This document shows, piece by piece, positions 40,599-64,000 of a stretch of DNA of 64,000 bases. Each line of letters starts with the position of its first letter. Position 1 is the first letter of the stretch. The position numbers and the translations under genes are program-made. The stretch is taken from the IMG/VR virus record IMGVR_UViG_3300023202_000247, positions 248,001 through 312,000 of that record; one strand, given 5' to 3'. Under the pieces are notes generated by a model. It was not told where the DNA came from, did not search any database, and was given only the letters and a program-made list of their open reading frames with translations.

Positions 40599-40599
40599 A

Positions 40600-42308: not shown

Positions 42309-42316
42309 ATTGAGTA

Positions 42317-42325
42317 TATATACCA
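42317..42325 (-). promoter_or_regulatory. Putative extended -10 promoter TGGTATATA, 8 nt before ATG 42308
   Basis: Minus-strand copy of the motif in a 16-bp divergent spacer. Confidence 0.5.
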
Positions 42326-42966: not shown

Positions 42967-42968
42967 AA

Positions 42969-47089: not shown

Positions 47090-47124
47090 GTTCTACAAAT
47101 ATGCATTCTGTGCCATATATTTTG

Positions 47125-48030
47125 ATGTTTCCAATTGTTTTAGCTAGTCATTTGGTAAGGTCTTCTAAGCCGGGGGAAATCCATGGTGGATTGTATCTTG
47201 CCAATTTTAACAATAAAAAATACGAATGTGTCATGGATTGGAGCGATCCAATAAATTGGCAAGGTCGTGGAGCAGATAGAGGTCTTCGCGGTGTATCTGT
47301 CGTTGATAAAAACACAATTTATGTACTTACATCACGCTCATTGCTTTTATTAGATGGCAAATTTAGAGTTGTTAAAAGATTTGAAAATGAATATCTTTTG
47401 TTTTGTCATGAAACTTGTAGATTCAATAACAAGTTATTTATAGCTTCTACAGGATATGACTCGATTATTTCATTCAATTTAAATACTAAGAAGTTTGATG
47501 AGGGGTTTTGTGTTCGTGGTAAACGATTGAAAATATTCAATCCAAATCAAAAGGGACAATTGAAAGATAATGACACGATGCATATCAACAACGTTTATGC
47601 TGATGAGCGAGGTATTTTCTTTTGTGGGACAAGTTTGGACAAGTTGTATCGTATAAAAAACAACAATGTTGAAATATACTGTAATTCTCCAAAAGGTACT
47701 CACAATTGTAGACCATTTAATAGTAGTGAGATAATATATAATGATACTAAAAGAAACTGTACCGTAATTCGTAAAAACGGTGGGGGCGGTGAGTTCAAAT
47801 TTCCAATAAAAGCAATTCCTCGTCAAAACATGACTAGTCTTCAAGGTAATGATGCCATTGCAAAACAGCCATTTGCTCGCGGATTAGTTGTTGACAAAGG
47901 TTACATCATAAATGGTTCATCTCCAGCATTACTTTCTTGTTATGACATATCTAGCAAGAAAAAGGTTAAAGAGATAAAAATGTCTAACGACATTAGGGTT
48001 ACCATTCATGGTATGGCGGTGTATGAGTGA
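47125..48030 (+). CDS. Beta-propeller protein (DUF4915/TIGR03032-like)
   Basis: RGLRG, HET, HINNV, THN and PFARGL blade motifs. The likely start is ATG 47125. Confidence 0.5.
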   Translation: MFPIVLASHLVRSSKPGEIHGGLYLANFNNKKYECVMDWSDPINWQGRGADRGLRGVSVVDKNTIYVLTSRSLLLLDGKFRVVKRFENEYLLFCHETCRFNNKLFIASTGYDSIISFNLNTKKFDEGFCVRGKRLKIFNPNQKGQLKDNDTMHINNVYADERGIFFCGTSLDKLYRIKNNNVEIYCNSPKGTHNCRPFNSSEIIYNDTKRNCTVIRKNGGGGEFKFPIKAIPRQNMTSLQGNDAIAKQPFARGLVVDKGYIINGSSPALLSCYDISSKKKVKEIKMSNDIRVTIHGMAVYE

Positions 48031-48785
48031 AAGCTTTGATTCTCACATATGATCGTCAAATTTCTTTTGCAAATTTGGTAATAGAATCTTACAATCATTT
48101 ATGGCCCGACAATGGTTTTGAGTGGATAGTACCATTCAATAATAAAAAACCAAACTTTACAACAACCAAAAATATAAATTTTATTCAATCTCCAAGTATG
48201 ATTCGTTCCACCGTAGAACGATTGCTTCACGGTTTGCCAAATGATGAATTTGTATTTTGGGCTTTTGACGATGTATATCCTCGCAAAATTGCCGACATAG
48301 ATACGTTAAAAGCATCTAGAGATTTGATATACAATGGTAAACCAAACAGGTTTGATTCTATTAGAATAGCTCATAGTATAGCAAACCCAAATGCTTGGAA
48401 AGGTGAAAAGGTTGATATCAATGGTACGAAGTACATTCATAAGAATGGTTTTGGTTCATTTTGGTTTCACCAATTCATAAATGTAAAAACACTGAAAAAG
48501 ATATTTTTAAATAACAGGCTGAAACATAATTATTCTATTAGGCAGGTTAATTCGTTCCCACCACATAAAGTGTTCATGCCCACCAAAAAGATTTGTTTCT
48601 TTGGTGAGACAGCTAGACACTCAGCAATGACGAAAAACGCTTACGATGATTTGAAGAAATATGGTATAAAAATACCAAAAATACCATTTATGAAAACTGT
48701 AGTAATAGTTGACAATCATACTAAAGCTGGAAAAAACGAGCTACGTCTCGTAGCTCGTGGTCATAAACCACCGGTGATATCATGA
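48027..48785 (+). CDS. Hypothetical protein, possibly GT-A-like
   Basis: MKALILTYD start and FWAFDD (DxD-like) motif, in the glycan locus. Confidence 0.45.
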   Translation: MKALILTYDRQISFANLVIESYNHLWPDNGFEWIVPFNNKKPNFTTTKNINFIQSPSMIRSTVERLLHGLPNDEFVFWAFDDVYPRKIADIDTLKASRDLIYNGKPNRFDSIRIAHSIANPNAWKGEKVDINGTKYIHKNGFGSFWFHQFINVKTLKKIFLNNRLKHNYSIRQVNSFPPHKVFMPTKKICFFGETARHSAMTKNAYDDLKKYGIKIPKIPFMKTVVIVDNHTKAGKNELRLVARGHKPPVIS

Positions 48786-49705
48786 CAAATTTGAGAAAAA
48801 TGAAGCTGCATATGCAAAGCCCGGTACAAATGTATTACCCAGAACCGGAGTTTTTTATAGAAAAGATAAAGAATAAAGAGAGTTTTTATTTCATTCGTTT
48901 TCAAATTGAATGGTGGTTGATATTGCGTTTTGGTCTCTGGGCCATGGGGTACAAGGACAAACCCGTTCCGAGGCATCTGTTCAAAGACAAACAGTTTCTA
49001 AAACGTTGGGGTAAAGAAGTTGTTAGGGCTTGGGATACAAAACGCAAGGGTAAAAAACGAAAATACAAATTTGATCCCAATGTATTTGCTGACTTGATTG
49101 AAATATCAGTTTCACCCAAACCTAAGGATTTTTACTTTGCATATAGTGATCGTGCATTTAGCAAGCACTTGCCGCCAAAAGCTTGGGATCATAGATGGAA
49201 GTGGACATCTGAATTTTTTCAACAATTGTTCCCGCCAGGTGAGATCAATTACTGTTCTTTAATATTTAGAAACTGGGCACAATCTGGCAAAATTCATAAA
49301 ATAATGGAAAGTGTGAAAAATGAAAACGTCTTAATCATCGGACCTTATTATTATAAAAATTTTGCTAATAAACTCGGCTTCAAGAATGCTAAATACATAG
49401 AGATACATCATACACATGCTACTATAAATATAGATAAAAAACTAAAAGAGATTCGGCGTAAGCGTCAAGAATGGTTTGGCGATGAATATGTATTTGGATT
49501 GGTGGTTGGCGGGGCTGCTGGCGCATGGCTAATTCGAAACATGTATGGAATGAAAAATACATCTTTCATAGAGTTTGGCAGAGCTTTAGATGTTTACTAC
49601 TATTATGATAAAGTTTATAAACAAATTCCACAATGGATTTGGGGAACATGGATGGAAAACCACAAACCCAAATGGGTTGCAGAGCACAAGGAGTTGATAC
49701 GATGA
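48782..49705 (+). CDS. Hypothetical protein, possibly GT-D-fold-like
   Basis: SFYFIRF...VLIIGP...GGAAG...FIEFGRALD loosely follows the GT-D (DUF1792) layout. Confidence 0.35.
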   Translation: MTNLRKMKLHMQSPVQMYYPEPEFFIEKIKNKESFYFIRFQIEWWLILRFGLWAMGYKDKPVPRHLFKDKQFLKRWGKEVVRAWDTKRKGKKRKYKFDPNVFADLIEISVSPKPKDFYFAYSDRAFSKHLPPKAWDHRWKWTSEFFQQLFPPGEINYCSLIFRNWAQSGKIHKIMESVKNENVLIIGPYYYKNFANKLGFKNAKYIEIHHTHATINIDKKLKEIRRKRQEWFGDEYVFGLVVGGAAGAWLIRNMYGMKNTSFIEFGRALDVYYYYDKVYKQIPQWIWGTWMENHKPKWVAEHKELIR

Positions 49706-50268
49706 GTTTAGTTATTGCTGCTATGGGTAGATGTGGTTCTACCATGCTTTTTTCTACACTAAAGAGAAAGTTTTACAAAGCCATATTTGAAAAAGATTTA
49801 GCATCATCGTATGCTGATGGTTTAATCATCAAGACTCACGACTTTGCACCTAAACAATTGAAAAACTGTAAAGTTATTTATCTATTTGGAGATCCTAGAA
49901 ATATAGTTCTTTCAGCTCATACTAAAGGTAAAATTGATAGGAGAAGACATTATAGAAACATGCATGCTCCTTTCAAAGAAGAATTTTTGCAGAATGATAC
50001 ATTTGTAATTAAAGATACTTTGAGGCTGGAAGATAATTTTGATTCATGGTATAAAAAACAATCATTTCCTTTGTTGACTCTTAGATACGAAACTCTTTAT
50101 GATAATCGAGACGTGTTGAAACAATTTTTGGGATTTCCTCCTATGTTGCCAAAACCCAGAAACAGAACGACGAACTGGGAAAAGTTTCCCAGAGCTAACA
50201 GGTTGGACAAAACATATGCAGGTCTTTTGAAAAAAATAGAAGAGGCTGAAGATGCAAAAATTTGGTAA
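49702..50268 (+). CDS. Sulfotransferase-like P-loop protein
   Basis: AMGRCGSTML loop, IKTH, YLFGDPRN-x-x-x-S and LRYE motifs. Start at ATG 49702 after an AAGGAG. Confidence 0.55.
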   Translation: MSLVIAAMGRCGSTMLFSTLKRKFYKAIFEKDLASSYADGLIIKTHDFAPKQLKNCKVIYLFGDPRNIVLSAHTKGKIDRRRHYRNMHAPFKEEFLQNDTFVIKDTLRLEDNFDSWYKKQSFPLLTLRYETLYDNRDVLKQFLGFPPMLPKPRNRTTNWEKFPRANRLDKTYAGLLKKIEEAEDAKIW

Positions 50269-50271
50269 CGC

Positions 50272-50280
50272 TGATATATA
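50272..50280 (+). promoter_or_regulatory. Putative extended -10 promoter TGATATATA, 7 nt before the gmd ATG
   Basis: Motif copy. No SD between the motif and ATG 50288. Confidence 0.55.
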
Positions 50281-50287
50281 AATAAGC

Positions 50288-51286
50288 ATGCAAAATGCTA
50301 TTATCACTGGTATAACTGGGCAAACCGGTTCATACCTAGCCAAAATTTTATTAGATAAAAATTACAAAGTGTATGGTGTTGTTAGAAGAAGTAGTAACTT
50401 CAATACTCAACGCATAGACGATGTCTATGACCACCATAATTTAGAGTTGGTATATGGAGACCTAGCTGATTATTCTTCGATTACCAGTATAGTAAATGAT
50501 GTTAAACCGGATTTATTTTTCAACATGGCGGCAATGAGCCATGTGAGAGTATCATTCGACATTCCAGAATACACAATGGATGTTACTGGAACTGGTGTGA
50601 TTAGATGTTTGGAAGCGATACGTCGCAATAGTCCTAATACACGTTTTTTGCAGGCATCATCATCCGAAATGTTTGGTAGCTCTCCACCTCCTCAAAATGA
50701 AGAAACTCCTTTTCATCCTCGTTCACCGTACGCCGTTGCAAAAGTTGCTGGATATCATGCTACTGTAAATTATAGAGAAGCATATGATATGTTTGCAAGC
50801 AATGCAATAAGTTACAATCATGAGAGTCCATTTCGAGGGGAGACATTTGTAACTCGTAAAATAACAAGAGCCGCTACTAGAATAAAATGTGGGTTACAAG
50901 ATAAATTGTATCTTGGAAACTTATCGGCAAAAAGAGATTGGTCTCATGCTAAAGATGTTGCAAATGCCATGTATATGATTTTAACTTCTGATAAGCCAGA
51001 TGATTATTGTATAGCTTCTGGTTATATGTACAGCGTCGAGGAATTTGTCGAGAAGGTATTTTCTAGTTTAGAGTTAAATTGGAAAGATTATGTAGAAATT
51101 GATCCTCGTTATTTTCGCCCGACTGAGGTTGATGCTTTGTGTGGAGATTCCAGTAAATTGCGAAAAAATCTAGGATGGGAACTGGAGTATGATTTTGATT
51201 CTCTGGTCAAAGAGATGGTTGATGAGGATATGAAATCTGCACAGAAAGAAAAACTCGTATTAGATTATGAGAAAGGTGACGGTTGA
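50288..51286 (+). CDS. gmd: GDP-mannose 4,6-dehydratase
   Basis: ITGITGQTGSYLA, AMSHVRVSF, QASSSEMFG, PRSPYAVAK, NHESP-x-RGETFVTRKI and RYFRPTEVD. Confidence 0.97.
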   Translation: MQNAIITGITGQTGSYLAKILLDKNYKVYGVVRRSSNFNTQRIDDVYDHHNLELVYGDLADYSSITSIVNDVKPDLFFNMAAMSHVRVSFDIPEYTMDVTGTGVIRCLEAIRRNSPNTRFLQASSSEMFGSSPPPQNEETPFHPRSPYAVAKVAGYHATVNYREAYDMFASNAISYNHESPFRGETFVTRKITRAATRIKCGLQDKLYLGNLSAKRDWSHAKDVANAMYMILTSDKPDDYCIASGYMYSVEEFVEKVFSSLELNWKDYVEIDPRYFRPTEVDALCGDSSKLRKNLGWELEYDFDSLVKEMVDEDMKSAQKEKLVLDYEKGDG

Positions 51287-52206
51287 GATTACTGATAACT
51301 GGAAGTGGCGGATTTCTTGGTAAAAATGTCGTACCAAAATTTGCCAAAGAACAAAGTGTAACGCTATTGACACCTCGTAGCCGGGAACTCGATCTTCTCG
51401 ACCAAAGCTCTACGATGGTGTATTTCGAGCGTGAGCGGCCTGATGTAGTTTTGCACATGGCGGCTGTTTGCGGTGGTATCAAAGCAAATATGAAAGCGCC
51501 CGCGGACTTCATTCATCTCAATTCAGAGATGACTATAAATATATTTAACGCAATTAAAAAATTTGATGTAAAATCTCTCTACACTTTAGGTTCAGTTTGC
51601 TCTTATCCTTGTCATACACCGGTTCCATTTAAAGAGAAAAACATTTGGAATGGTTATCCTGAAGCAACAAATGCTCCATATGGAATTGCAAAGAGATTGC
51701 AAATGGAGATGCAAAAGCAGTATGCAGATCAATATGGGTTGAAAGGTGCACATCTCATACCTGTTAACTTGTTTGGGCCTCAGGACCTATTCGATTTAGA
51801 AAATAGTCACGTTATTCCAGCTTTGATAAACAAATTCGTTACAGCTGTTAAAAATAACAAACAGTCTGTAGAGTTGTGGGGTAGTGGGCAGGCGACTAGA
51901 GAGTTTTTGTATGTCGAAGATTGTGCACATGCGCTTCATAAAGCTGTCATGCTAGAATTAGATTATCCAGAACCAATAAACCTCGGAACTGGAGAATCAA
52001 TAAAAATAATTGATCTGGCAAATATAATAGCTGATATAGTAAAATATAGGGGTAATATAGTTACTACTGGTGATGTTAATGACGGGCAGCCTTTGAGGCA
52101 GCTCGACGTTTCACGTGCATATGAAACATTTGGTTTTCGTGCGCGAACCAGTTTGAGAGAAGGTTTGGAAAAAACCATAAAATGGTATGAGGAAAATTAT
52201 GAGTGA
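51283..52206 (+). CDS. fcl: GDP-L-fucose synthase
   Basis: TGSGGFLG, AAVCGGIKAN, LGSVCSYP, YGIAK, SHVIPALI and WGSGQATREFLYV. Confidence 0.95.
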   Translation: MRLLITGSGGFLGKNVVPKFAKEQSVTLLTPRSRELDLLDQSSTMVYFERERPDVVLHMAAVCGGIKANMKAPADFIHLNSEMTINIFNAIKKFDVKSLYTLGSVCSYPCHTPVPFKEKNIWNGYPEATNAPYGIAKRLQMEMQKQYADQYGLKGAHLIPVNLFGPQDLFDLENSHVIPALINKFVTAVKNNKQSVELWGSGQATREFLYVEDCAHALHKAVMLELDYPEPINLGTGESIKIIDLANIIADIVKYRGNIVTTGDVNDGQPLRQLDVSRAYETFGFRARTSLREGLEKTIKWYEENYE

Positions 52207-53698
52207 TGATAAAAATAAGACCTTGGCGGATAAATTGGCAGCTAAGATGCTTGAAAAGGACATTATAACAAAGTCAAAGTTTGAAGAGCAGGTTGTTGCT
52301 TTTTCTAGTTGGCCAAAAGAAACGTTGCAAAAAATTGAATCTTTTTTGTTTGACGGTAAGTCTAGTGATACCGGTGGAGTGGTAATCAATACAGGAACAG
52401 ATGATAAAGATAAAGCATCTTTAAAAGTTTCTGATTCTGGTGCCACTGTAGAGGCCGACAAAATTGATTTTTTTACCATCAAATTTGATTCGGATGGAAA
52501 CATAGTATCTAAATTTCCAGTTATGAGCAGGGAACAAGAATACAAGCTCATAGAGCGTTTCAAAAATGCATTAAGAGAACAACAAGAGTTACATTATGGT
52601 TCATCGGTTGAAGATGGCAGTTCTTTAAAAGATGTAGATATTCCAAAGCGTATAAAAAATTTGGTAAAAGATTCTTCTAGGAAGGCTGAGTTTAAAAATG
52701 ATGACGAACTATATGATAAGTTTTCTTTAGCTGAGTTGAAAGATTTAAAAGAGAAACTTTCTTTAGCTGAGTTGAAAGGTTTAAAAGAGAAACTTTCTTT
52801 GAATGATTTGAAAGAGATGAAAGATCCTGAACTTACTGAAACGCCTCTTGGCGATGCTAAAAAATACTTGGGTGATAAATCTTATACGCTTAAAGATGTT
52901 GATGATGGTAGAGTTATCAAACGAACTCTCAATTGGGAGTCTGATGCCAAGTGGTTCAAAAATCAATACCCTGGAGCATTCAGACGTTCCGATAATGGTG
53001 TTGCAAAAACTAGTAGCGAAGCAGTTGCTGGTATCGCCATTAAACCCGGTGAGCCATCACGATATGTAGTTGTTAATGGTGAAAAGAAAAGGGAAATTAA
53101 ACTAACGCCTGATAAAATGAAAGAGTCAAAATCGAAAACAATTGGTAAAAGCCGTGGTAGTTTGAGAAATGTTCAATCTGAAAGCGAATATAAAAAACGT
53201 GAAAATGAGCTAAAACAATCACTATCACAATGTGACGTTAAAGAGGTACAAGACGCTATTGATGACTTAAACCAAGTCGACCCTGTTCAAAAACATATTC
53301 AATCAGTATCAAACGGAAATAATCTTACTGATATTCTAGAAAGTGATGAAGACTTTAAAGATTTGTTGAAAGATTATTCATTTTTAGATGAGCAGAAAAA
53401 TACAACTAATCTTTTAGAAAAGCTTGAAGAGAAGATTGTTGAAGCAACTCGTGTTGAACTAAAGGCGAAACGTGAGTTATTTTTGTTAAATCGTGCATTG
53501 GAAGCCTCTTATGTTGCGGCTGAAAAAGAACCAGTTACGCTTGAGTTGCCCAAGCCTGTTGAAGTAAAACCAACATCTAAACAGTTTTTGGATACTTTCA
53601 AAGACATAACTGAAAGCGTTTTGGGTAAAGAATATCATTCTGGAGATGATTGGGAAAAGATTTATAATAGAAACAGATTAAGGCATATCAGAAAATAA
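52199..53698 (+). CDS. Hypothetical charged coiled-coil-rich protein with 12-aa tandem repeat
   Basis: Long Lys/Glu/Asp-rich ORF with SLAELK(D/G)LKEKL repeats. Confidence 0.55.
   Translation: MSDDKNKTLADKLAAKMLEKDIITKSKFEEQVVAFSSWPKETLQKIESFLFDGKSSDTGGVVINTGTDDKDKASLKVSDSGATVEADKIDFFTIKFDSDGNIVSKFPVMSREQEYKLIERFKNALREQQELHYGSSVEDGSSLKDVDIPKRIKNLVKDSSRKAEFKNDDELYDKFSLAELKDLKEKLSLAELKGLKEKLSLNDLKEMKDPELTETPLGDAKKYLGDKSYTLKDVDDGRVIKRTLNWESDAKWFKNQYPGAFRRSDNGVAKTSSEAVAGIAIKPGEPSRYVVVNGEKKREIKLTPDKMKESKSKTIGKSRGSLRNVQSESEYKKRENELKQSLSQCDVKEVQDAIDDLNQVDPVQKHIQSVSNGNNLTDILESDEDFKDLLKDYSFLDEQKNTTNLLEKLEEKIVEATRVELKAKRELFLLNRALEASYVAAEKEPVTLELPKPVEVKPTSKQFLDTFKDITESVLGKEYHSGDDWEKIYNRNRLRHIRK
52722..52825 (+). 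repeat. 36-bp tandem repeat (two near-identical copies plus a degenerate third)
   Basis: 52722-52757 and 52758-52793 differ at one base (GAT/GGT). The third copy is degenerate. Confidence 0.85.
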
Positions 53699-53718
53699 TA
53701 GACTCAAGTAAATAATTA

Positions 53719-54687
53719 ATGAGTAAGAAAAAGAAAATACTAGTAACTGGTTCGTGTGGTTTCATATTTAGTAACTTTATGCGATATGCAATCACACAAC
53801 ATGATGTGAATTACAAATTCATAAGCGTTGACAAAGTTAAAAGTTCACGTGTGATGTACAATGTATTCTCAAATAAAAATCACACGTTCCACATTGGTGA
53901 TGTTGCGGATTCGCACTTCATGGATGTAGTATTTCAAGTTGAAGAACCTGATATAGTAATTCACGCGGCAGCTGAAAGTTTCGTGGATAGTTCTATAAAA
54001 AATGCGGACCCGTTTATTCATTCCAATGTTCGTGGAACACAAACTGTTATCGATGCTTGTGTAAAGTGGGGCGTGGAACGTTTAGTATATATTTCATCAG
54101 ATGAGATATATGGACAACTAACTAGTGAAGACGATCCTCCATGGCCCGAAACTGCACCAATGAATCCACGAAATCCATATAGTGCAACAAAAGCCGCAGG
54201 AGAGTTGTTGGTCAAAGCGGCTCATCAAACACATGGATTGAATTATAATATAACTCGTTGTTGTAATAATTATGGTCCAAGACAAGATCCTGAAAAGTTT
54301 CTTCCAAAGATAATTAAATGTGTTATCAACAATGAAAAGATACCAGTTTATGGTCAAGGTAGACAGGTAAGAGATTGGCTATATGTAAGTGATAATTGTA
54401 GGGCTGTTCTTGATATATTAGAAAAAGGAGCTATAAACGAAACTTATAATATTGCAGCTAATCAAGAATATTCTAATATAGAAATCTGTCAACTAGTATG
54501 CAATGCGCTTGGTAAAGGACATGATTTGATTGAATTTGTCGAGGATAGACCAGGACATGACTTTCGTTATAGTGTTGATTGTACAAAATTGAAAGGTATC
54601 GGTTGGGAGCCTGAATTCAAGTTCAAACAGGGATTGGAAGAGACTGCCAAGTGGTATATAAATAACAAAAGTTGGTTTTTGAAGTGA
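53719..54687 (+). CDS. rfbB: dTDP-glucose 4,6-dehydratase
   Basis: VTGSCGFIFSN, AAESFVDSSI, ISSDEIYG, NPYSATKA, NNYGPRQDPEKF, RDWLYV and DRPGHDFRY. Confidence 0.92.
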   Translation: MSKKKKILVTGSCGFIFSNFMRYAITQHDVNYKFISVDKVKSSRVMYNVFSNKNHTFHIGDVADSHFMDVVFQVEEPDIVIHAAAESFVDSSIKNADPFIHSNVRGTQTVIDACVKWGVERLVYISSDEIYGQLTSEDDPPWPETAPMNPRNPYSATKAAGELLVKAAHQTHGLNYNITRCCNNYGPRQDPEKFLPKIIKCVINNEKIPVYGQGRQVRDWLYVSDNCRAVLDILEKGAINETYNIAANQEYSNIEICQLVCNALGKGHDLIEFVEDRPGHDFRYSVDCTKLKGIGWEPEFKFKQGLEETAKWYINNKSWFLK

Positions 54688-54706: not shown

Positions 54707-56086
54707 ATGTCAACAAAAAGTGAAAAAGTAAAATCTGATGAGTCTTTGGTTGATGATGTTTCTGACGAGAACATCGAGGTCAGCGATGATGACTTAGAAC
54801 AGCAGAAAATGGAAAAGTTAAAAGCAAAATTAAAAGCAAAAGAAGACAGTGAAAAGAAAACAGAAGAGGGTACAGTGCCACCAAAAATAGTTGAGCCAAA
54901 AAAGCAAAGCATACGATTTGGAATTATCGGATCGGGTCAAGGTGGCTCCAGACTCGCAGAAGTATTTTATAAACTTGGTTATGATTCAATTGCTGTAAAC
55001 ACAGCTTCACAAGATTTACAAGGCATTGAAATGCCAGACTCCAATAAGCTTTTGCTTTCATATGGTCTGGGTGGTGCCGGCAAAGAGCTTGATATTGGAT
55101 ATGAGGCCGCTGAAGCTCATCGTGCGGCTATCAATGAGCTTGTCTATAACAAACTAAACGATGCAGAACTTTTGGTATTTTGCACCTCATTGGGTGGTGG
55201 TTCTGGTGCGGGTTCTGCTGAAGTTATCGTTGATATTTTATCCAAATTGGATCGTCCAGTTTGTGTAATTACCATTTTACCAATGAGCACGGATGACCCT
55301 CAAACTAAAGACAACGCAATCAAGACGTTGACAAAGTTTACAAATATGGTTAATTCTAGTGCAATTGATAATCTAATTGTTGTGGATAATGCAAGAATTG
55401 AAACTATATATAGTGATGTTGGTCCATTGAATTTCTTCAATGTTTCTAATAAAGCTATTGTTGAGCCAATTGATAAGTTCAATACCCTGTCTCACATGGC
55501 ATCTTCAGTAAAGCCATTGGATCCAACTGAGTTTGGAAAATTATTTACCGATGGTCGCGGGTTGACTATTTACGGTATGATGAAGGTTTATGATTTTGAA
55601 GAAGATACAGCTATTGCTGAGGCGGTGGTCGAAAACATGAGCGGAAGCTTACTGGCAAGTGGTTTTGATTTAAAGCAGGCTCGTTATGCTGGGGCAATTT
55701 TTACAGCACCGCGCAGAGTATGGGATAAGATTCCAAATGCTAGTGTTAACTATGCAAAAAGTATGGTTAATGATGTTTGCGGAAATCCAATTGGAACGTT
55801 CCATGGAATCTATGAGGTAGATGATGATGAAGATTGTGTCCGAGTATACTCTATGTTTTCGGGTCTCGGTCTGCCCGATGACCGTATCAAACAGCTTCGA
55901 GAAGATGCTAAAGAACGCATGGCTCAGGCAGCTGAAAAGGATGAGCATCGCAAGTTGACATTGAAAATTGATGCTCAAGAAGAAACTGTTAGTGCAGCAG
56001 ATGCTATAAAGAAAAAGATTGAGCGTAAAAAGAGCAAGTTTGGTAAGTTGCACAGTCGGGCTGTACAAGATAGACGAAAGAAGTAA
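54707..56086 (+). CDS. Tubulin/FtsZ-family GTPase (PhuZ/TubZ-like)
   Basis: IGSGQGGSRLA, AVNT, GAGK and the GGGSGAG signature loop. LDPTE is in the T7-loop position. Acidic N-terminal and charged C-terminal tails. Confidence 0.88.
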   Translation: MSTKSEKVKSDESLVDDVSDENIEVSDDDLEQQKMEKLKAKLKAKEDSEKKTEEGTVPPKIVEPKKQSIRFGIIGSGQGGSRLAEVFYKLGYDSIAVNTASQDLQGIEMPDSNKLLLSYGLGGAGKELDIGYEAAEAHRAAINELVYNKLNDAELLVFCTSLGGGSGAGSAEVIVDILSKLDRPVCVITILPMSTDDPQTKDNAIKTLTKFTNMVNSSAIDNLIVVDNARIETIYSDVGPLNFFNVSNKAIVEPIDKFNTLSHMASSVKPLDPTEFGKLFTDGRGLTIYGMMKVYDFEEDTAIAEAVVENMSGSLLASGFDLKQARYAGAIFTAPRRVWDKIPNASVNYAKSMVNDVCGNPIGTFHGIYEVDDDEDCVRVYSMFSGLGLPDDRIKQLREDAKERMAQAAEKDEHRKLTLKIDAQEETVSAADAIKKKIERKKSKFGKLHSRAVQDRRKK

Positions 56087-56092
56087 TTTGTC

Positions 56093-57574
56093 ATGACTGT
56101 TACTATCATTCACGGTAGAAGCAGTTGCCAGGTGCGAGGGCTCGATGATTACGATATAATCAAAGAACTGGAAGAAGAGCTGTCGTTTGTGCTTCAAGGT
56201 GCTGAGCACATGAACCTTTTTAAAGGTTTTGAAAAGGACGGTAAATTCACGAAGTGGGACGGGGTTGTCAGCTTATTGAGCGGCAACCTTCGTTTTGCTC
56301 CGGGACTATTGTCACGAGTTGAAAGGTTTTTTCGAGAACGTGATATAGATTATGTCGTTGAGGACAACCGTCCGCGACTGACAACTGGACAAAGAATAGA
56401 CATATTACCGAAGCTGAAGGCTAGTGGTAAAACGCCTTATCCTTATCAATTAGATGCAGTAAAAAAAGCTGTCTCTGTTGAGCGTGGAATTATTCGTATC
56501 GGAACTGGGGGCGGCAAAACTGTCGTAGCCGCCCTTATCGTAGCGGAGATTGGTAAGCCGGCAGTTGTTTATGTTATTGGCAAAGATCTCTTATATCAAA
56601 TTCGATCTTTATTTCAGTCGTTGTTTGATGAGCCAATTGGAATCATTGGTGATGGCAAATGTGAGATTCACAGAATAAACATTGCAACGATTTGGTCGAT
56701 AGGCACCGCTCTCGGGTTGCGCAAACAAAAACGGGTCGAGGGCGAGGAAAAAGAGAAGCCTCCTCCGAAGGAGCATCATAAAGATATCAAGAAAATGTTG
56801 GCTCATACTGGCGTTCACATTCTAGATGAATGTCATCTTGCAGCTTGTGATACGGTACAGGGTATTTTTAAAACAGTTTGTACCGAACATATTTACGGTA
56901 TGAGCGCTTCTCCTTGGAGAGATGATGGTGCGGATCTCTTGATTGAGAATTATCTTGGGGAGAAGATTGTAGATATTGGGGCAAAATATCTTATAGATAA
57001 CGGGTATTTGGTTAAACCAACGATACGATTTCTCCCAGTAAAACCTCATCCATATAAATCAACCAAAAGTTACAAGAGGATATACTCGCAATATATCGTA
57101 AATAATCCTCATAGAAATGCGATGGTTATAAAGGCCGCTCAGAGGCTCGTAGAACAGGGTTTCAAGACTTTGGTACTCTTTCACACCATAAGCCACGGAA
57201 AAGCTTTATATAATGAACTGTCCAAGACTATACCGTGTGAAATTCTAAGTGGAAAAGATAATTCTGACGAACGTGAGCGTGTGAAGAAGCGTTTGGAAGA
57301 TGGGGAGATAAGTTTAGTACTTGCTTCTAAGATTTTCGATATTGGAGTTGATCTTCCCATCTTGAACGCACTCGTTACAGCTGGAGGCGGCAAGTCTTCC
57401 GTAAGAGCGCTTCAACGAATCGGTCGAGTAATCCGCCGCGCGCCGAATAAAGAAATGGCGGCTGTGATCGATTTTGCCGATCAAGCTCCATATTTGTTCT
57501 CGCATAGCGAGGCACGAAGAGATATTTACTCGCAGGAATTTGAAGTCAAATGGCCAAAAAAACAAGAACCTTAA
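56093..57574 (+). CDS. Superfamily 2 DNA helicase (UvsW/XPB-like)
   Basis: GTGGGKT, DECH, SASP, IGVDLP and QRIGRVIR motifs. Confidence 0.92.
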   Translation: MTVTIIHGRSSCQVRGLDDYDIIKELEEELSFVLQGAEHMNLFKGFEKDGKFTKWDGVVSLLSGNLRFAPGLLSRVERFFRERDIDYVVEDNRPRLTTGQRIDILPKLKASGKTPYPYQLDAVKKAVSVERGIIRIGTGGGKTVVAALIVAEIGKPAVVYVIGKDLLYQIRSLFQSLFDEPIGIIGDGKCEIHRINIATIWSIGTALGLRKQKRVEGEEKEKPPPKEHHKDIKKMLAHTGVHILDECHLAACDTVQGIFKTVCTEHIYGMSASPWRDDGADLLIENYLGEKIVDIGAKYLIDNGYLVKPTIRFLPVKPHPYKSTKSYKRIYSQYIVNNPHRNAMVIKAAQRLVEQGFKTLVLFHTISHGKALYNELSKTIPCEILSGKDNSDERERVKKRLEDGEISLVLASKIFDIGVDLPILNALVTAGGGKSSVRALQRIGRVIRRAPNKEMAAVIDFADQAPYLFSHSEARRDIYSQEFEVKWPKKQEP

Positions 57575-58191
57575 CACTCGTCCCCGATAAAGTAAAAAGG
57601 CCCAGCGGGCTCAAAAAAGATGGTACACCAAACTTACATTGGAAAAAGTTTGAAAACCGATTGCGCACTTACTCTAAAGTTCCGCTAGAAGATTGGAAAG
57701 AGACAGAAGTACTAGCCTATATTCTTGATCGTTACGAAAAAGAATACGAAATTAATTTTACATTGTCATATAGCGGACCACCAACCAAATGTGGTGAAAT
57801 GTATTGCACACGGCGCATGATTGCAACTTTGGGAACTGAAGACCCAACCATTCTCAAAGAATACATAGATTGGGTCTATGATGATGTTATCAAAGTTCAA
57901 AAGTTACAACTTGAAAGTTTAGCCTTCTTTTTTACAGCTTCTCTTTGTAGAAAGTTCAAAACCGTTTACAGACAACGTAACAAGATTACAAAAGATACAA
58001 AGCTCAAAGATGAGTTTGTAAGTATCGTAACTGATAATGGTTTTGATGCCGAAACGTATGGAGACTTGGCATTTATGAAAATGGCCGTCGATACGGATTC
58101 AGAACGAGATGACGCTGAACAAATTACGATGTTACTCGATCAGCTGAAACAAAATGGATTGAATATAGATGTTTTAGATAGATTGGAATAA
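57550..58191 (+). CDS. Hypothetical protein in replication module
   Basis: 213-aa helical ORF between the helicase and the loader. Confidence 0.55.
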   Translation: MAKKTRTLTLVPDKVKRPSGLKKDGTPNLHWKKFENRLRTYSKVPLEDWKETEVLAYILDRYEKEYEINFTLSYSGPPTKCGEMYCTRRMIATLGTEDPTILKEYIDWVYDDVIKVQKLQLESLAFFFTASLCRKFKTVYRQRNKITKDTKLKDEFVSIVTDNGFDAETYGDLAFMKMAVDTDSERDDAEQITMLLDQLKQNGLNIDVLDRLE

Positions 58192-58193
58192 TT

Positions 58194-58670
58194 ATGACAC
58201 CTAGTGAAAATGATCATGTAAAGATATTATTCAAAAATGGTGTAACATACAGCGGCATCGTTTTGTCCTGGTCGAAAGATGAAGCAGTTTTACGTGATTT
58301 TCACAGCAAGGATATTTCAATCATACACAATCCTCATATAAAAGCTCTTATTATAAAAATAGTAAGAGAAACGCCTGAAGAGGCAAAACAAATTTTTATC
58401 GATAAGCCGCTGGAGCTGGATGAACCAGAACGAGATCCTGGTCTTCGTGGAAAGAAATTGGCCGACTTGTATATGGCAAAGGCCGAAGCTGAGCGAGAAC
58501 GTTTTCGTAAAAAAATGAATTCGTTTGATAATACAGGAGCACAGGAAGTAAATTATGCAATACCAACAAGCCTTCAAAAACCCACTTTTGAACATTCCGA
58601 AGACCAAAACTACAGCAATGATTCAGAAGGTAATCAACTCTTTTCCGGAAGCGAATGGTTTAAAGATTAG
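58194..58670 (+). CDS. Hypothetical protein
   Basis: 158 aa. The N-terminus (VKILFKNGVTYSGIVLSW) is Sm/Hfq-like in pattern, but this assignment is weak. Confidence 0.5.
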   Translation: MTPSENDHVKILFKNGVTYSGIVLSWSKDEAVLRDFHSKDISIIHNPHIKALIIKIVRETPEEAKQIFIDKPLELDEPERDPGLRGKKLADLYMAKAEAERERFRKKMNSFDNTGAQEVNYAIPTSLQKPTFEHSEDQNYSNDSEGNQLFSGSEWFKD

Positions 58671-59277
58671 TGATGGATTGCCTGATGAGTGCCTTGTCGC
58701 AATTGATGGGTTGAATCGTTATGCTGAGGCAAACATACCCGTTGATTATTGGTTTTTGGATATGGAAGAGTTTAAGGGCGATTCCAATATAAAGAAGCAT
58801 TACGATAATATCACATCAGATTTTCGCAAGTCTTATGTTGATGGTATTCGCTACTGTTTCGCAGGTAAGCACGGGCGTGGTAAGACGATGGTTTGCGCGT
58901 GTGTTCTCAAAAAGGCTGTTGAAAAAGGTTACAGTGGACTTTACACAACTTTAAGTGACATAGTTGCTTTGATGGCATCACATGATGCTGATGGTAAGTA
59001 TACAGCAAGACAAGATTTATTGCAAGTAGACTTTCTCGTTATTGATGAATTCGACCCTCGTTTCATGGGTTCTACAAATTCTGCTGATTTGTTTGGTAGA
59101 ATTTTGGAATCAATTATCAGAGGTAGATTACAGAACAGAATGCCTACTATGCTTTGTACAAATAGTAAAGACGCAACATCAGCGTTTAGTGGTCCTCTCA
59201 AAGAGAGCATAGGAAGTTTGATGTATATGTTCAAAATAGTTCCGGTTCTAGGGAAGGATTTTAGAAAGGTTGATTGA
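58555..59277 (+). CDS. DnaC/IstB-like AAA+ helicase loader
   Basis: Walker A GKHGRGKT, Walker B FLVIDE, and R-x-x-N-x-x-PT-x-x-CTN. Lies directly upstream of DnaB. Confidence 0.85.
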   Translation: MQYQQAFKNPLLNIPKTKTTAMIQKVINSFPEANGLKISDGLPDECLVAIDGLNRYAEANIPVDYWFLDMEEFKGDSNIKKHYDNITSDFRKSYVDGIRYCFAGKHGRGKTMVCACVLKKAVEKGYSGLYTTLSDIVALMASHDADGKYTARQDLLQVDFLVIDEFDPRFMGSTNSADLFGRILESIIRGRLQNRMPTMLCTNSKDATSAFSGPLKESIGSLMYMFKIVPVLGKDFRKVD

Positions 59278-60743
59278 TGAGCGATGAAATTGATTTGAGA
59301 ATATTCCGAACGATGATATCGGAGAGAAGCAAAGGGGTAGAGTTTGCTCTAACATATGATCATGACATGTTTTCTCCGGACTATCAACTCGTTGCAAAAA
59401 TGTGTATCGAGTATTTGAGAAAATATAGGGAAAGCCCTACTAAACGAACATTATCGGAATTTGCTGGAAGATCATATAAGCCGCGCATAGAGGAAGTTTG
59501 GGGAAAAGCAGAGGAAATTGATTATAGCGACAAAGAATTTGTATTCGATTTAAACAGACTCAAGTCCCGATATGAACAATTCATCATAAAAAAGATTTCG
59601 GATATAAGTGCTAACCCTGGAGAAAACGCAGAACGTGATATCAAGCTTTTGCTTCAAAAACTGAAAACTGTTAAAGATGGTCGCAAGTTTATTCAAAAAA
59701 CAGTTTCAGAAGGGTTGGACCAAGCTTCGCACGATTACGATCTCAAAAAGAAAAATCCGAAGTCAAACAAGAAAATACCTTGTGGCTTTTCGGCAATTGA
59801 CTTTGCCATGTCTGGCGGTCTTGCTCCGGGTGAGTTGTTTGTCGTTGGTGGAGAGACTGGTTCTGGTAAGTCCATGTTTCTGTTGAACATGGCAATTCAA
59901 ATATGGTTACAGGGAAACTCGATAGATACACCACCCGATGAAATGGTGGAGGGAAAGAATGTAACTTATTATAGTTTGGAAATGCCTTGGGAAGAATGTT
60001 TTGGAAGGCTCATTGCAAGATTGGCTCAAGTTCCAGAGGAAGATTATTCCAATGGTGATTTGAATATAGATCAAGAAATGCGCGTGGATAAAGCAAAGGC
60101 ATTTATTGAAAATTATCATTGGCAATTTGAAATTGTAGATATGCCACGAGGTATGACTCCTGATGAATTGGAATTGCGGCACGAGGATGCAAACTTGAAA
60201 TATGAGCCGCACGTCGTAGCTGTTGATTATCTGACCCTGATGAATTTGCCATCCAGCGAACAAGATTGGCTCAAAATGGGCACGTTGGCTGGAGCGTTGC
60301 ATGAATTTGCGCGCGCAAACAAGGTCATTGCCTTGAGTGGTGTTCAATTGAATGATGTTCAAAGAGGTGAAAAGAAAGATATCAAGAAAAAGGGAGAGAA
60401 GGGTGTGTTGGTTGGTGGTCATAGAATTGGACGTTCGAGTCAAATGCTTCACCATATCAACGCTTTCGTTCAAATAGAAACACGCCCTGATGAAGATATG
60501 TATGGAGATTTCAAATTTCACTACATCAAAAACCGTCGTGGTCCAAAACCACAGAACTGTACTTTGAAAAAGAATTTTACCAACAGTACTCTTACAGATA
60601 TTCCATATGTCTATAAAAAGCAAGAAACTAGCGATAATTCCGCATATAATGACGATCAAGATGATAATCTAAACAATGATATTTCTGAAAGTTTCAAAAA
60701 AGTAAAAGTAAAGATAGATAAAGATGAGCAAGAACCCGAATAA
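59277..60743 (+). CDS. dnaB: Replicative DNA helicase, DnaB family
   Basis: GGETGSGKS, YYSLEM, VDYLTLM, QLN and KNRRGP motifs. Confidence 0.9.
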   Translation: MSDEIDLRIFRTMISERSKGVEFALTYDHDMFSPDYQLVAKMCIEYLRKYRESPTKRTLSEFAGRSYKPRIEEVWGKAEEIDYSDKEFVFDLNRLKSRYEQFIIKKISDISANPGENAERDIKLLLQKLKTVKDGRKFIQKTVSEGLDQASHDYDLKKKNPKSNKKIPCGFSAIDFAMSGGLAPGELFVVGGETGSGKSMFLLNMAIQIWLQGNSIDTPPDEMVEGKNVTYYSLEMPWEECFGRLIARLAQVPEEDYSNGDLNIDQEMRVDKAKAFIENYHWQFEIVDMPRGMTPDELELRHEDANLKYEPHVVAVDYLTLMNLPSSEQDWLKMGTLAGALHEFARANKVIALSGVQLNDVQRGEKKDIKKKGEKGVLVGGHRIGRSSQMLHHINAFVQIETRPDEDMYGDFKFHYIKNRRGPKPQNCTLKKNFTNSTLTDIPYVYKKQETSDNSAYNDDQDDNLNNDISESFKKVKVKIDKDEQEPE

Positions 60744-61223: not shown

Positions 61224-61375
61224 CGAACTCTGAGAGAGACAGAATTATCAATATATTGCGTGAGATTTTATTCGTTGATGATATCGAAATAAAAGATTGT
61301 GCAATAGAATCTCTCATAGATATGTTACAAGATTTGGAAACTAAGGATATGAATGAAAAGATTGACGGAGACTGA
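61220..61375 (+). CDS. Small acidic hypothetical protein (51 aa, not in ORF track)
   Basis: The GTG start overlaps the previous stop (GTGA). Reads MTNSERDRIINILREILFVDDIEIKDCAIESLIDMLQDLETKDMNEKIDGD. Confidence 0.45.
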   Translation: MTNSERDRIINILREILFVDDIEIKDCAIESLIDMLQDLETKDMNEKIDGD

Positions 61376-62027
61376 GGCGAATGAAATTCTACAGAAATTA
61401 GTTGATCTTCGCAATAAACGTGATAGCTGTAAACGTAAGACTTCCAATAAGTGGAAGTTGCTCAATGAACAATATACGAAATATGAAGGATATTGTTTAA
61501 AGAAGTTTGATTACTTGGTTGTAAGCAAAACAAAAAAATACTCTAGATTTGCTAATTATAAAGACTTACAACAGGATGGTCGGCTTGCATTGATGTTGGC
61601 ATTGAGAAGTTTCGATTTGGAAAAGGGAAGTTTCTTTTGGTGGGCGGAAAAATATATACAGACCAAAATCAGTCGAGAGGCCAATCGACACAGCACTATA
61701 AAGATCCCGATAAAGCAGACGAAAAATTTTCAACCGTTCAAAGTTAGCGATATGCCAGTCATCATAGATGATGAACCTGATGCTTTTGAAACAATTGAGA
61801 ATAATCAATTAAAAGAGTCTGTTAACAGGGCAATTGATAAGCTGCCAGAAGATCAAAGGCAAATTATCAAACTTAATGGCATAAAGTCATATTCGATAAG
61901 TAAAATTGCTCGAGAGATGAAAATTGCTCGTCCTACATGCATAAAATTGCTACAAGAAGCAAAACAAAATTTAAAGAACAACTTGGAAAATGCTCGCTAC
62001 TGCGAGATGGAAAACCAGAACATTTAA
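61353..62027 (+). CDS. RNA polymerase sigma-70-family factor
   Basis: Region 2 (DLQQDGRLALMLALRSFDLEKGSFFWWA) and region 4 HTH (LPEDQRQII...SISKIAREMKIAR). Confidence 0.88.
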   Translation: MKRLTETEANEILQKLVDLRNKRDSCKRKTSNKWKLLNEQYTKYEGYCLKKFDYLVVSKTKKYSRFANYKDLQQDGRLALMLALRSFDLEKGSFFWWAEKYIQTKISREANRHSTIKIPIKQTKNFQPFKVSDMPVIIDDEPDAFETIENNQLKESVNRAIDKLPEDQRQIIKLNGIKSYSISKIAREMKIARPTCIKLLQEAKQNLKNNLENARYCEMENQNI

Positions 62028-62039: not shown

Positions 62040-64000
62040 ATGGGAACCGATGACGCTCGCGATCCTGAGGGACAGGTGTCCCCAAATTATTCATACTCAG
62101 AGGCTTATAATGCTTCACTTGAATATTTTCATGGTAATGATTTAGCTGCAAAAGTTTTTGTTGATAAGTATGCGGTTCGTGATAAAAACGATCGGTTCGT
62201 AGAGAAAACTCCCGATGATATGCATTTGAGACTTGCGCAAGAATTTGCACGAGTCGATGAGAGCTATGGTATGGATTATGAAAAAAGTTTTAATGATACC
62301 TATAACGCTATCAAAAACTTTTCCAGAATAGTTCCACAAGGTTCTCCCATGGCTGCCGTGGGTAACTCTCATCAACTGATGAGTGCAAGTAATTGTGTTG
62401 TTGTAGAGAGTCCAGATGATAGTATTGCTGGAATTTTTCGTACAGCTACAGAACTTGCTCAGCTTTACAAAAGACGTTGCGGAGTTGGAACGGACATCAG
62501 CACTTTACGTCCTGATGGAATGCAGGTAAACAACGCAGCGCGCACAACCAGTGGTGCATGGAGCTTTGCCGATTTTTTTAGTTATGTAACTAGAATGATT
62601 GGGCAGTGTATTGCGAAGGGGGAGCGTGTCCTAACCAAAGATGGTCTAAAAGCTATTGAAGATGTATCTTCCCAGGATTCAGTTTGGACCAAAAAAGGAT
62701 GGGTGAGTGTCACTCGTTTGGTGAATAATGGAACGAAAAACATACTGAAGCTCCAGACCTCGGAAGGGTTCTCCATTCGAGCATCCAAAGATCATGTTTT
62801 CTTGACAGAAGATGACGGAACTCTTCTTGAGAAGAAGTTGGGTGATTTTGAACCAGGGGATTCAATCGTTTTGATTCCTGGTAACTTTATTACAAAGCCC
62901 AATCAGGAATTGATTCCACCAAAATATATAAAGAAGTTACATAACAATTCCAACAAACTTAATGAAGATGTATTTACACCTCTGAAGCTAAATGATGATT
63001 TAGCATATCTTCTCGGACAAATGTATGGTGATGGTAGTGTTGAATATGATAAGTTTGGAGAACCAACTGTTATTTCAATTGCTTGTTCTCATGGTCACCC
63101 TCTGATTAGAGAGAAGGTGTGTAATATAGTCAGGTCTTTGTTTGGGTATGAACCGGTCGTAAAACCCGGCGATGGCGCAGTAGATAAGGTTGAAATTCAT
63201 AGCAAGGTAATCTGTCATTGGTTACAGCTCAATGGAATCCTAAAGAGTCTTTCTAGTGATATTCGCGTGCCATCTAGTATTATCTCTAGCCCATCATCTG
63301 TTCAGATGTCTTTTTTGGCTGGGTTTTTTGATGCAGATGGTACAAATGGAAGGTCTAAGAAGGGGTATGCTTTTAATACTACCTCATTGCCTTTTGCACG
63401 TGATCTGCAAGTTCTGTTAATGGCAAACGGGATTGTTAGTAAGCGACATGAAGAAGACAGATCCCATAACGGTTGGAAGACGCTTTATTCAGTTATGGTT
63501 ACCGGAACACATGCGCAAGAAGAGTTAATTCAACATCTTGAAGGTGGAGTATTTGGAGCTGTAAAGATATACGAGAAGTTTATTTCCAAGCGGGATAACT
63601 GCCTCACACCTTACAAGGCCAAAACACTTGGAGTTAGTCACAATAAGTATTCTTATATCCCGGATAACTCACAATATGTATCAGCTAGCGCATACAATAA
63701 GTTGAAAAAAGCGGAAGAGAACTGTGCAAATGATGAGTTGTTAATAACTGCTTCGATTCAATCAATTGTTGAGGATGGAGAAGAGGAGACGTTTGATCTT
63801 GTGCTTCCAGAAGAGCATCTCTTCTGGTGCGAAGGATTTTATGTTCATAACAGCGGCAGGCGTGGCGCTCTCATGATCACTATGGATGTACATCATCCAG
63901 ACATTGTCAAGTTTTCAACCATGAAACAAGACTTGACGAAAGTTACCGGCGCAAATGTTTCAGTTCGCTTGAGTAACGAATTCTTACAGGCTGTAGAAAA
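62040..64000 (+). CDS. nrdJ: Ribonucleotide reductase large subunit, probably class II (B12-dependent), intein-containing, 3'-truncated by window edge
   Basis: Frame open from ATG 62040 (after TAGGAG) to the window end. Motifs: KVFVDKYA, IVPQGSPM, SNCVVV, GVGTDISTLRP, Q/SGRRGALM, HPDI and VTGANVSV. No ATP-cone. Confidence 0.88.
   Translation, partial: MGTDDARDPEGQVSPNYSYSEAYNASLEYFHGNDLAAKVFVDKYAVRDKNDRFVEKTPDDMHLRLAQEFARVDESYGMDYEKSFNDTYNAIKNFSRIVPQGSPMAAVGNSHQLMSASNCVVVESPDDSIAGIFRTATELAQLYKRRCGVGTDISTLRPDGMQVNNAARTTSGAWSFADFFSYVTRMIGQCIAKGERVLTKDGLKAIEDVSSQDSVWTKKGWVSVTRLVNNGTKNILKLQTSEGFSIRASKDHVFLTEDDGTLLEKKLGDFEPGDSIVLIPGNFITKPNQELIPPKYIKKLHNNSNKLNEDVFTPLKLNDDLAYLLGQMYGDGSVEYDKFGEPTVISIACSHGHPLIREKVCNIVRSLFGYEPVVKPGDGAVDKVEIHSKVICHWLQLNGILKSLSSDIRVPSSIISSPSSVQMSFLAGFFDADGTNGRSKKGYAFNTTSLPFARDLQVLLMANGIVSKRHEEDRSHNGWKTLYSVMVTGTHAQEELIQHLEGGVFGAVKIYEKFISKRDNCLTPYKAKTLGVSHNKYSYIPDNSQYVSASAYNKLKKAEENCANDELLITASIQSIVEDGEEETFDLVLPEEHLFWCEGFYVHNSGRRGALMITMDVHHPDIVKFSTMKQDLTKVTGANVSVRLSNEFLQAVE
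62607..63851 (+). mobile_element. Intein with LAGLIDADG homing endonuclease (415 aa)
   Basis: Starts CIAKGERVLT after ...MIGQ. Block B SKDH, LAGLIDADG motifs LLGQMYGDG and FLAGFFDADG. Ends FYVHN followed by a Ser nucleophile (SGRRGA). I translated it by hand and found no stop. Confidence 0.95.

Follow-up and report, generated by a model that had tools for sequence, protein, structure and literature searches.

Phage tubulins have so far been understood in two settings: the chimallin nucleus in the case of PhuZ, and a Clostridium prophage in the case of TubZ, there with its companions TubR and TubY. The PhuZ of phiKZ-like phages co-occurs with chimallin and with multisubunit RNA polymerases (PMC7824862, PMC10299810). 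On the TubZ side, the TubZ of the Bacillus thuringiensis plasmid pBtoxis (PDB 2xka, 2xkb, 3m89, 3j4s) is a plasmid partition motor with TubR and tubC; the pXO1-like RepX/TubZ and the TubZ proteins of Planococcus, Lysinibacillus and Alicyclobacillus plasmids have a winged-helix TubR gene of about 100–115 amino acids (aa) directly upstream, and in some cases also a MerR-type TubY; and the c-st TubZ of a Clostridium botulinum phage (PDB 3v3t, 4xcq), which carries an acidic tail, lies adjacent to tubR and tubY as a prophage partition system. The C-terminal tail of TubZ contacts the next subunit and is also the binding site for TubR-centromere complexes (TubRC) and for TubY (PMC5322520). TubY itself attaches to membranes and DNA through an amphipathic, lysine-rich tail, for which a likeness to the basic tails of TubZ has been pointed out (PMC7762940). 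Here we analyse the tubulin gene P0001, contained in a 64-kb stretch of DNA, which we call the window, of the IMG/VR virus record IMGVR_UViG_3300023202_000247; this record has 321,461 bp and is estimated to be 75% complete.

We conclude that P0001 is a real, well-conserved gene encoding a divergent TubZ-type phage tubulin, which is neither a host FtsZ nor a PhuZ, and that this family assignment is secure. What sets it and its clade apart from the known TubZ proteins is an extension at the N-terminus, a conserved tail of a distinctive kind and, in the record searched, the lack of a recognisable adaptor. Our literature search found no paper treating this clade; a huge-phage survey names tubulin homologues (PhuZ) in general terms, and the reviews of jumbo and nucleus-forming phages cover PhuZ.

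Family assignment, GTPase core and distribution

The frame of P0001 is open over 459 aa, with a GGAG ribosome-binding site 8 nt 5' of its ATG, and it is the single tubulin gene of the 321-kb record. Its translation matches the Pfam family Tubulin (PF00091) with 59 bits against a cut-off of 33 (residues 82–235), a family also found above threshold in four tested relatives, and it matches TubZ-like_C (PF22453) over residues 259–398 with 27.4 bits, a small margin over the cut-off of 26; in the relatives, the latter family gave 45.5 bits for P0097, 28.4 for P0011, 23.1 (under the cut-off) for P0045, and no match for P0037. When the solved structures were searched by sequence, the RepX/TubZ of a pXO1-like plasmid (4ei7) came out on top, followed by FtsZ at 5e-11 and weaker, and by the B. 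thuringiensis TubZ at about 4e-8. The identities to these relatives are low, with about 20–27% for the pXO1-like, Planococcus, Lysinibacillus and Alicyclobacillus proteins and 18–20% for the TubZ of pBtoxis.

The predicted structure points in the same direction. The AlphaFold2 model of P0001 has a mean predicted local distance difference test score (pLDDT) of 80, and its core at residues 67–420 stays mostly between 81 and 97 per 10-residue block, with dips to 77 and 62 near residues 301–320. In a Foldseek comparison of this model with the PDB, the first 23 matches were all TubZ, with the pBtoxis structures on top (E 5e-25 over about 400 columns, with the aligned region including the C-terminal helix and reaching model residue 426), and PhuZ fell outside the top 50; the same comparison gave 35–37 for CetZ, 32–33 for c-st TubZ and 31–32 for FtsZ. 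The PhuZ models of BFVD matched the P0001 model with E 5e-12 and template modelling (TM) scores of 0.46–0.6.

A profile hidden Markov model (HMM) built from 120 clade members was scored against reference proteins taken from annotated records. The best score, 146 bits, went to gp138 of Bacillus phage G, to our knowledge the only cultivated megaphage, a phage of about 500 kb without chimallin. The TubZ/RepX proteins of Planococcus, Lysinibacillus, Alicyclobacillus and pXO1 scored 101–121 bits, the B. thuringiensis TubZ 69, c-st TubZ 56 and five FtsZ proteins 39–51, and the two PhuZ proteins, of phiKZ and 201phi2-1, were the lowest and thus the most distant of the references with 17–18 bits. In a quick maximum-likelihood tree covering TubZ, PhuZ and FtsZ references together with the query clade, the five FtsZ proteins form a clade with 100% support in the Shimodaira–Hasegawa-like approximate likelihood-ratio test (SH-aLRT), with the query clade outside; the query clade is not nested in the PhuZ or plasmid TubZ groups either, on long branches and with the deep nodes among TubZ, PhuZ and the clade left without resolution.

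Two other assignments were rejected on these and further grounds. P0001 is not an FtsZ equivalog, given the separate FtsZ clade in the tree and a partial match to the NCBIfam ftsZ model TIGR00065 (9e-18) that reaches 64.7 bits against a cut-off of 295.2; the protein does not cluster with host FtsZ in a division context, and its own context consists of phage glycan and replication genes. Membership in PhuZ was discarded because of the clade HMM scores, the match to PHROG 4733 ("tubulin PhuZ") that is only partial (residues 112–217, E 9e-8), the basic tail, and the lack of chimallin and of a multisubunit RNA polymerase in the record. The tail of PhuZ is acidic in 201phi2-1 and near neutral in phiKZ, with net charges of -9 and -1, respectively, over the last 60 residues, in contrast with the basic tail of the clade. 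PhuZ is likewise a jumbo-phage tubulin, and a functional analogy in the positioning of replicating phage DNA is plausible.

Biochemical work on FtsZ and TubZ has established that the GTPase site of each subunit is completed by the T7 loop of its neighbour, which gives rise to polar and dynamic filaments. The elements for this are present in P0001 (Table 1): the residues of T1, T3, T4, T6 and T7 are invariant or nearly so in the alignment of 120 relatives, in which an NTAxQDL element and D227/N228 are also invariant. The acidic pair D272/E275 would complete the GTPase site of the neighbouring subunit. Given the conservation of the loop residues and of the T7 acidic pair in the 120 relatives, the polymerisation-dependent GTPase machinery is intact at the sequence level. 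The initial annotation, which had read the gene as a phage-encoded GTPase of the tubulin/FtsZ family from its GGGSGAG loop, is thus borne out, since the GTP-binding and T7 loops are intact and the GGGSGAG signature lies inside the 59-bit Tubulin match, far beyond chance. A homodimer prediction with two copies of residues 62–459 and GTP returned a score of 0.00 and a mark of 0.42, which bears neither way on polymerisation.

The clade is large and belongs to big genomes. A word search gave more than 1,196 matches, the best 120 of which, used for the alignment and the profile, show 53–69% identity and 431–492 aa (most of them about 440–475) on contigs of up to 455 kb. Scanning IMG/VR with the alignment yielded 143 relatives on contigs of up to 481 kb; 80 of these loci were kept, at 50–60% identity except for one 100%-identical copy of the locus (L100). 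Five source records of the relatives, of 447–481 kb, are rated 100% complete, one of them with direct terminal repeats. IMG/VR labels two complete (100%) relatives of about 450–480 kb (the records behind L062 and L043) as "provirus", which would have a bearing on their lifestyle if real and may be an artefact of the classifier. Members come from environmental metagenomes, including microbial mats, and carry automatic "FtsZ" labels only ("cell division GTPase FtsZ" at the Joint Genome Institute, JGI); in UniProt, a protein of an uncultured Caudovirales phage, also named FtsZ, shares 52% identity.

By comparison, the 185,579 genomes of prokaryote species, with one representative each, gave two matches only, both on contigs of metagenome-assembled genomes (MAGs), namely an Actinomycetota MAG with 39% identity and a fragment of a Paceibacterota MAG. 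Among the 50,697 deposited phage genomes, phage G alone matches, with 23.5% identity, and a megablast of 8 kb against the same phage records found no match. The family is therefore phage-specific, with 143 IMG/VR relatives against two cellular matches and one deposited phage, and it is widespread in environmental metagenomes.

The N-terminal extension and the conserved C-terminal tail

Both ends of P0001 depart from the known proteins. The initial annotation had noted long charged termini, and the counts agree: residues 1–66 hold 14 lysines or arginines and 19 aspartates or glutamates, and residues 400–459 hold 19 and 11, respectively. At the N-terminus, the pLDDT falls below 50 at residues 1–26 and 49–61. 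The extension measures 52–100 aa, with a mean of about 65, in the 36 of the 120 clade members whose core start could be located by pattern; across all 120, the first 60 residues are about 41% charged, and their column identity is 0.44–0.48 vs. 0.65–0.83 in the core. In contrast, the reference TubZ, FtsZ and PhuZ proteins begin 2–25 aa before the first strand and none has a comparable extension; this includes the plasmid TubZ proteins and gp138 of phage G, which has 376 aa and also ends in a different tail.

The C-terminal peptide is conserved at the level of the core, with a column identity of 0.72. The last 26 residues of P0001 contain 13 lysines or arginines vs. two aspartates or glutamates, and among the 120 relatives I434, I438, K441, S443, F445, L448, D455, R456 and K458 are conserved in at least 90% and R457 is invariant. 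The motif is retained in a homolog of 39% identity (L106). No C-terminal peptide of the FtsA/ZipA type is present in the tail of P0001. The tail motif KKSSFGKL resembles the TubY tails KKGFFGKLF, GGFFSKLF and KKSFLQKIF. A hydrophobic-moment test gave 0.48–0.67 for the tail vs. a proteome mean of 0.53, and, since known TubY tails themselves scored 0.34–0.60, the test does not discriminate.

Gene neighbourhood and companion genes

The tubZ-like gene forms part of one long co-directional array, in which it lies where a glycan block meets a replication block (Table 1); 353 of the 401 open reading frames (ORFs) of the record lie on a single strand. It starts 19 nt downstream of the epimerase gene and ends 6 nt upstream of the ATG of the UvsW-like helicase, so that it is equally tight on both sides. 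The UvsW-like helicase, the 213-aa ORF, the DnaC-like loader and DnaB follow 3' of the tubulin gene on the same strand in 71/71 loci with enough downstream sequence, and the epimerase lies directly 5' in 55 of 72 related loci. The distance between the tubulin and the helicase, extrapolated to the helicase start, is at most 150 nt in 16 of these 72 loci, 150–700 nt in 13 and more than 700 nt in 43, with inserted genes that include a GH25-lysozyme-like one (29 loci, by eye), a family of 82–116 aa (21 loci), GIY-YIG-like genes (8 loci) and others. In the locus of 39% identity, L106, glycosyltransferases are followed by the tubZ-like gene and by the UvsW-like helicase, and this 7.3-kb stretch ends before any loader or DnaB.

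Table 1. Positions in the 64-kb window of P0001, its parts and the adjoining genes.
Feature	Position	Strand	Evidence or remark
P0001, whole gene: TubZ-like GTPase of the tubulin/FtsZ superfamily	54707..56086 (including stop)	+	ORF list/translation; Pfam Tubulin 9.9e-16, TubZ-like_C 3.8e-6; PDB 4ei7 1e-18
N-terminal extension, residues 1–66	54707..54904	+	Charged, mostly disordered, one predicted helix (27–50)
Tubulin/FtsZ core, residues 67–420: GTPase domain, activation domain, long C-terminal helix 391–419	54905..55966	+	
T1 loop GIIGSGQGGS, residues 72–81	54920..54949	+	G72, G77, G80 invariant in 120 relatives
T4 signature GGGSGAG, residues 163–169	55193..55213	+	G163–G165, G167, A168, G169 invariant in 120 relatives
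T7 loop LDPTEF, residues 271–276, acidic pair D272/E275	55517..55534	+	D272 invariant, E275 at least 90%; aligns with FDASEF of RepX
Conserved basic C-terminal peptide, residues 434–459	56006..56083	+	Clade consensus roughly IKKxI..KKSSFGKLH..AVIDRRKK
NAD-dependent sugar epimerase/dehydratase, 322 aa, last gene of the glycan cluster	53719..54687	+	Pfam GDP_Man_Dehyd 2e-60, Epimerase 1e-58
UvsW-like superfamily 2 (SF2) DNA helicase	56093..57574	+	Pfam ResIII, Helicase_C, UvsW_N; PHROG 16 2e-69
Rest of the replication block: 213-aa ORF, 158-aa ORF, DnaC-like loader (58555–59277), DnaB-like helicase (59274–60743)	57550..60743	+	

The gene order is therefore old and stable, but a direct coupling to the helicase is not among its conserved features. 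The initial annotation had the gene heading a DNA replication operon, and this stands in part. In its favour are the order of epimerase or glycosyltransferase, tubulin and helicase, kept down to 39% identity, and the 6-nt gap to the helicase in this locus; against it are the 19-nt upstream gap, the lack of any promoter or terminator signal in between, and the 43 of 72 loci with more than 700 nt of unrelated genes before the helicase. Our promoter and terminator scan gave no more sites than shuffled sequence, and none separates the tubulin gene from the upstream sugar-nucleotide genes. The conserved order is compatible with a link to replication and equally with plain genome collinearity, and the role of organising replication, which the initial annotation had inferred for the protein, remains an inference. 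The cumulative GC skew climbs monotonically over the entire 321 kb of the record, so that it shows no signature of a replication origin or terminus and is uninformative on an origin near the tubZ-like gene.

As for the companions of TubZ, we inspected seven classical systems (pXO1, a pBtoxis-like plasmid, the Alicyclobacillus, Planococcus and Lysinibacillus plasmids, and phages c-st and G), each of which places a small gene of 81–115 aa where TubR would lie, directly 5' of tubZ; weak Pfam matches of the winged-helix or MarR type were obtained for four of these seven proteins. The P0001 locus has neither a TubR nor a TubY next to the gene, being flanked by the epimerase on the 5' side and the helicase on the 3' side, and when the seven TubR-position proteins were compared by phmmer with all six-frame ORFs of the record, the lowest E was 0.19. 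The sensitivity of this search is low, TubR proteins being so divergent that phmmer may miss them, and it covers a genome that is about 75% complete. The TubY references, searched in the same six-frame ORFs, gave nothing below E 0.05 besides one MerR-type helix-turn-helix (HTH) ORF (record positions 58020–58553), which was rejected as a TubY since it shares the HTH alone, without the coiled coil and the tail. No centromere-like (tubC) repeats were found near the gene, the only tandem repeat between 49 and 64 kb of the window being a coding one of three 36-nt units at 52710–52817. In phage G, the gene directly 5' of gp138 is gp137 (L011:5692–5988), a 98-aa ORF in the TubR position without a Pfam family, and phage G may carry a classical TubR-TubZ pair, without a counterpart in the megaphage clade.

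The initial annotation had recognised no chimallin-like gene in the window, and this holds well beyond it: chimallin (PF25677) gave nothing at E<=1 in the whole record and nothing in the five relatives of 447–481 kb rated 100% complete, the TubR and TubY searches having been confined to the record. The beta-type subunit of RNA polymerase (PF00562), tyrosine integrase and ParB are likewise absent from the record. The lack of chimallin and of a beta-type RNA polymerase subunit, together with the presence of a sigma factor gene (61353–62027, past the DnaB-like helicase), speaks for a phage that does not form a nucleus.

Several neighbours deserve a description of their own. The glycan-synthesis cluster directly 5' of the tubulin gene spans about 16 kb (window 38756–54687) and holds GT2, GT11 and GT1-like glycosyltransferases, a methyltransferase, a hexapeptide transferase (acetyltransferase-like), a PhyH dioxygenase, a GDP-mannose 4,6-dehydratase and two further epimerases; sugar genes occupy the equivalent place in other relatives, with sugar-nucleotide genes in L003 and glycosyltransferases in L019 and L106. 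Between its epimerase genes lies an ORF of 503 aa (52187–53698) without a Pfam or PHROG family, which contains the tandem repeat at 52710–52817 in frame; of the IMG/VR loci that were searched, the identical copy L100 alone has this ORF. The 82–116-aa family begins about 3 nt past the tubulin stop in 21 relatives (e.g., L030:11344–11595), often in two tandem copies, and has no Pfam family and no homolog in the 321-kb record.

On the 3' side, the 213-aa ORF gives a confident, all-helical model (pLDDT 91) without a significant structural match. As a candidate for a TubR-like adaptor or for an initiator that binds the origin it found no backing, having no Pfam or PHROG family, only viral hypothetical clusters in the Atlas, and no winged helix by our tests; the search with the 158-aa ORF gave no usable lead. 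This last ORF (58194–58670) and the DnaC-like one overlap by 116 nt as listed, and the true start of the DnaC-like protein is probably later than 58555, since the loader of the relatives starts further downstream. After the sigma factor gene comes a class II (B12-dependent) ribonucleotide reductase, which runs from 62040 to 63998 and past the end of the window, and whose closest deposited phage relatives, at about 50% identity in partial matches, are crAss-like and Bacteroides phages. The first half of the window (5345–10306 and 17560–30406) contains ORFs of 1653, 1079, 2226 and 974 aa, presumably virion or tail-fibre proteins.

Proposed function and rival explanations

The reading that we favour, and to which we give about even weight for and against, is that P0001 is the TubZ-type cytomotive GTPase of an uncultivated megaphage clade, with its GTP-driven filament positioning phage DNA or replication centres by way of the C-terminal tail. 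In such a mechanism, P0001 with GTP would polymerise head to tail, with the T7 loop activating hydrolysis in the next subunit, and the resulting filaments would be dynamic or treadmilling, as in TubZ. The conserved basic C-terminal peptide may be the handle that ties the filament to its cargo or partner, in the way of the C-tail of characterised TubZ; we read it so because its conservation matches that of the core and reaches the homolog of 39% identity, and because of this precedent in TubZ (PMC5322520). The cargo would be the phage DNA or a replication centre, as suggested by the replication-gene context and the genome size, and the filament would position or spread a genome of about 430–480 kb in the infected cell without a chimallin shell, with the tubulin gene presumably co-transcribed with the replication genes downstream.

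Some observations weigh against this proposal. The nearest cultured relative, gp138 of phage G, sits among nucleotide-metabolism genes and not among replication genes, and it was not detected by proteomics (PMC12484599). The synteny with the helicase may be mere collinearity, since the epimerase is an equally constant neighbour and unrelated genes are inserted in 43 of 72 loci. Finally, no TubR, TubY or centromere repeats that could link the filament to its cargo were found, in a search of low sensitivity on a record about 75% complete.

One variant is that the TubZ needs no TubR or TubY, because its basic C-terminal peptide binds DNA and/or membrane directly; the likeness of the tail to TubY tails allows for it, and we hold it to be a rather unlikely alternative. 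The peptide resembles the lysine-rich amphipathic tail of TubY and the membrane-targeting peptide of MinD, and the KKSSFGKL motif is close to TubY tails, which bind membranes and DNA (PMC7762940); in addition, every classical system inspected has a TubR gene directly 5', in the place where a 322-aa epimerase is found here, and neither adaptor turned up in the record. The resemblance is, however, that of a short motif of low complexity, hydrophobic residues are scarcer in this tail than in those of TubY or MinD, its hydrophobic moment is not over the proteome mean (in a test that failed to separate the real TubY tails too), and a divergent TubR could have escaped phmmer in an incomplete record. 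Such a divergent TubR, with a centromere elsewhere in the genome, is what a classical type III (TubZRC) partition system would require, one that maintains the phage in an episomal state, plasmid-like or pseudolysogenic. Among characterised proteins, the partition TubZ proteins of plasmids and prophages are indeed the closest relatives, a role of jumbo-phage tubulins in pseudolysogeny has been proposed (PMC7824862), and two complete relatives are classed as provirus by IMG/VR. Carrier-state partition nevertheless appears doubtful to us, and somewhat more so than direct binding by the tail, since the record has neither an integrase nor a ParB, no TubR occupies its canonical place upstream in this locus (where the epimerase lies in 55 of 72 loci), no iterated repeats occur near the gene, and the gene itself lies within a replication block of the lytic type.

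A literal role in replication and an interference with host FtsZ are, like carrier-state partition, less likely than our favoured reading. The top sequence match is annotated as "plasmid replication protein RepX" and the gene keeps a constant place directly ahead of the helicase, loader and DnaB block, so one could imagine a RepX-like factor acting in initiation or in replisome assembly with the UvsW-like, DnaC-like and DnaB-like proteins, instead of in positioning; the name RepX is, however, historical, the solved structures class RepX as a TubZ filament protein, and unrelated genes often come between the tubulin and the helicase, so that we find this role unlikely. We consider it highly improbable that the protein is an FtsZ mimic, interfering with or taking over host division during infection. 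The NTxxQxL, T3 and T4 motifs of the FtsZ type, the JGI label and the partial NCBIfam ftsZ match would fit such a mimic, but that match stays well short of the equivalog cut-off, the FtsZ clade is separate with full SH-aLRT support, the C-terminal domain with its long helix is of the TubZ type, and the peptide of the FtsA/ZipA type is missing.

The boldest reading, which we put forward tentatively and regard as rather unlikely, is that the clade adds a third system to those known for phage tubulins, next to the PhuZ/chimallin spindle and the TubZRC prophage partition. In it, TubZ would be sufficient by itself: the conserved basic tail, perhaps under the control of the acidic N-terminal extension, would attach the filaments directly to DNA, membrane or replisome, and would so organise the replication of a genome of about 450 kb in the open cytoplasm.

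The largest known phages, of 447–481 kb where complete, thus widely keep a TubZ-type filament protein without a nucleus shell and, in the one record searched, without a recognisable TubZ adaptor. This raises the questions of how a half-megabase genome is organised in the infected cell without such a shell, and of which partner the tail binds; in this protein, which is easy to express, the conserved tail and the N-terminal extension offer direct experimental handles.

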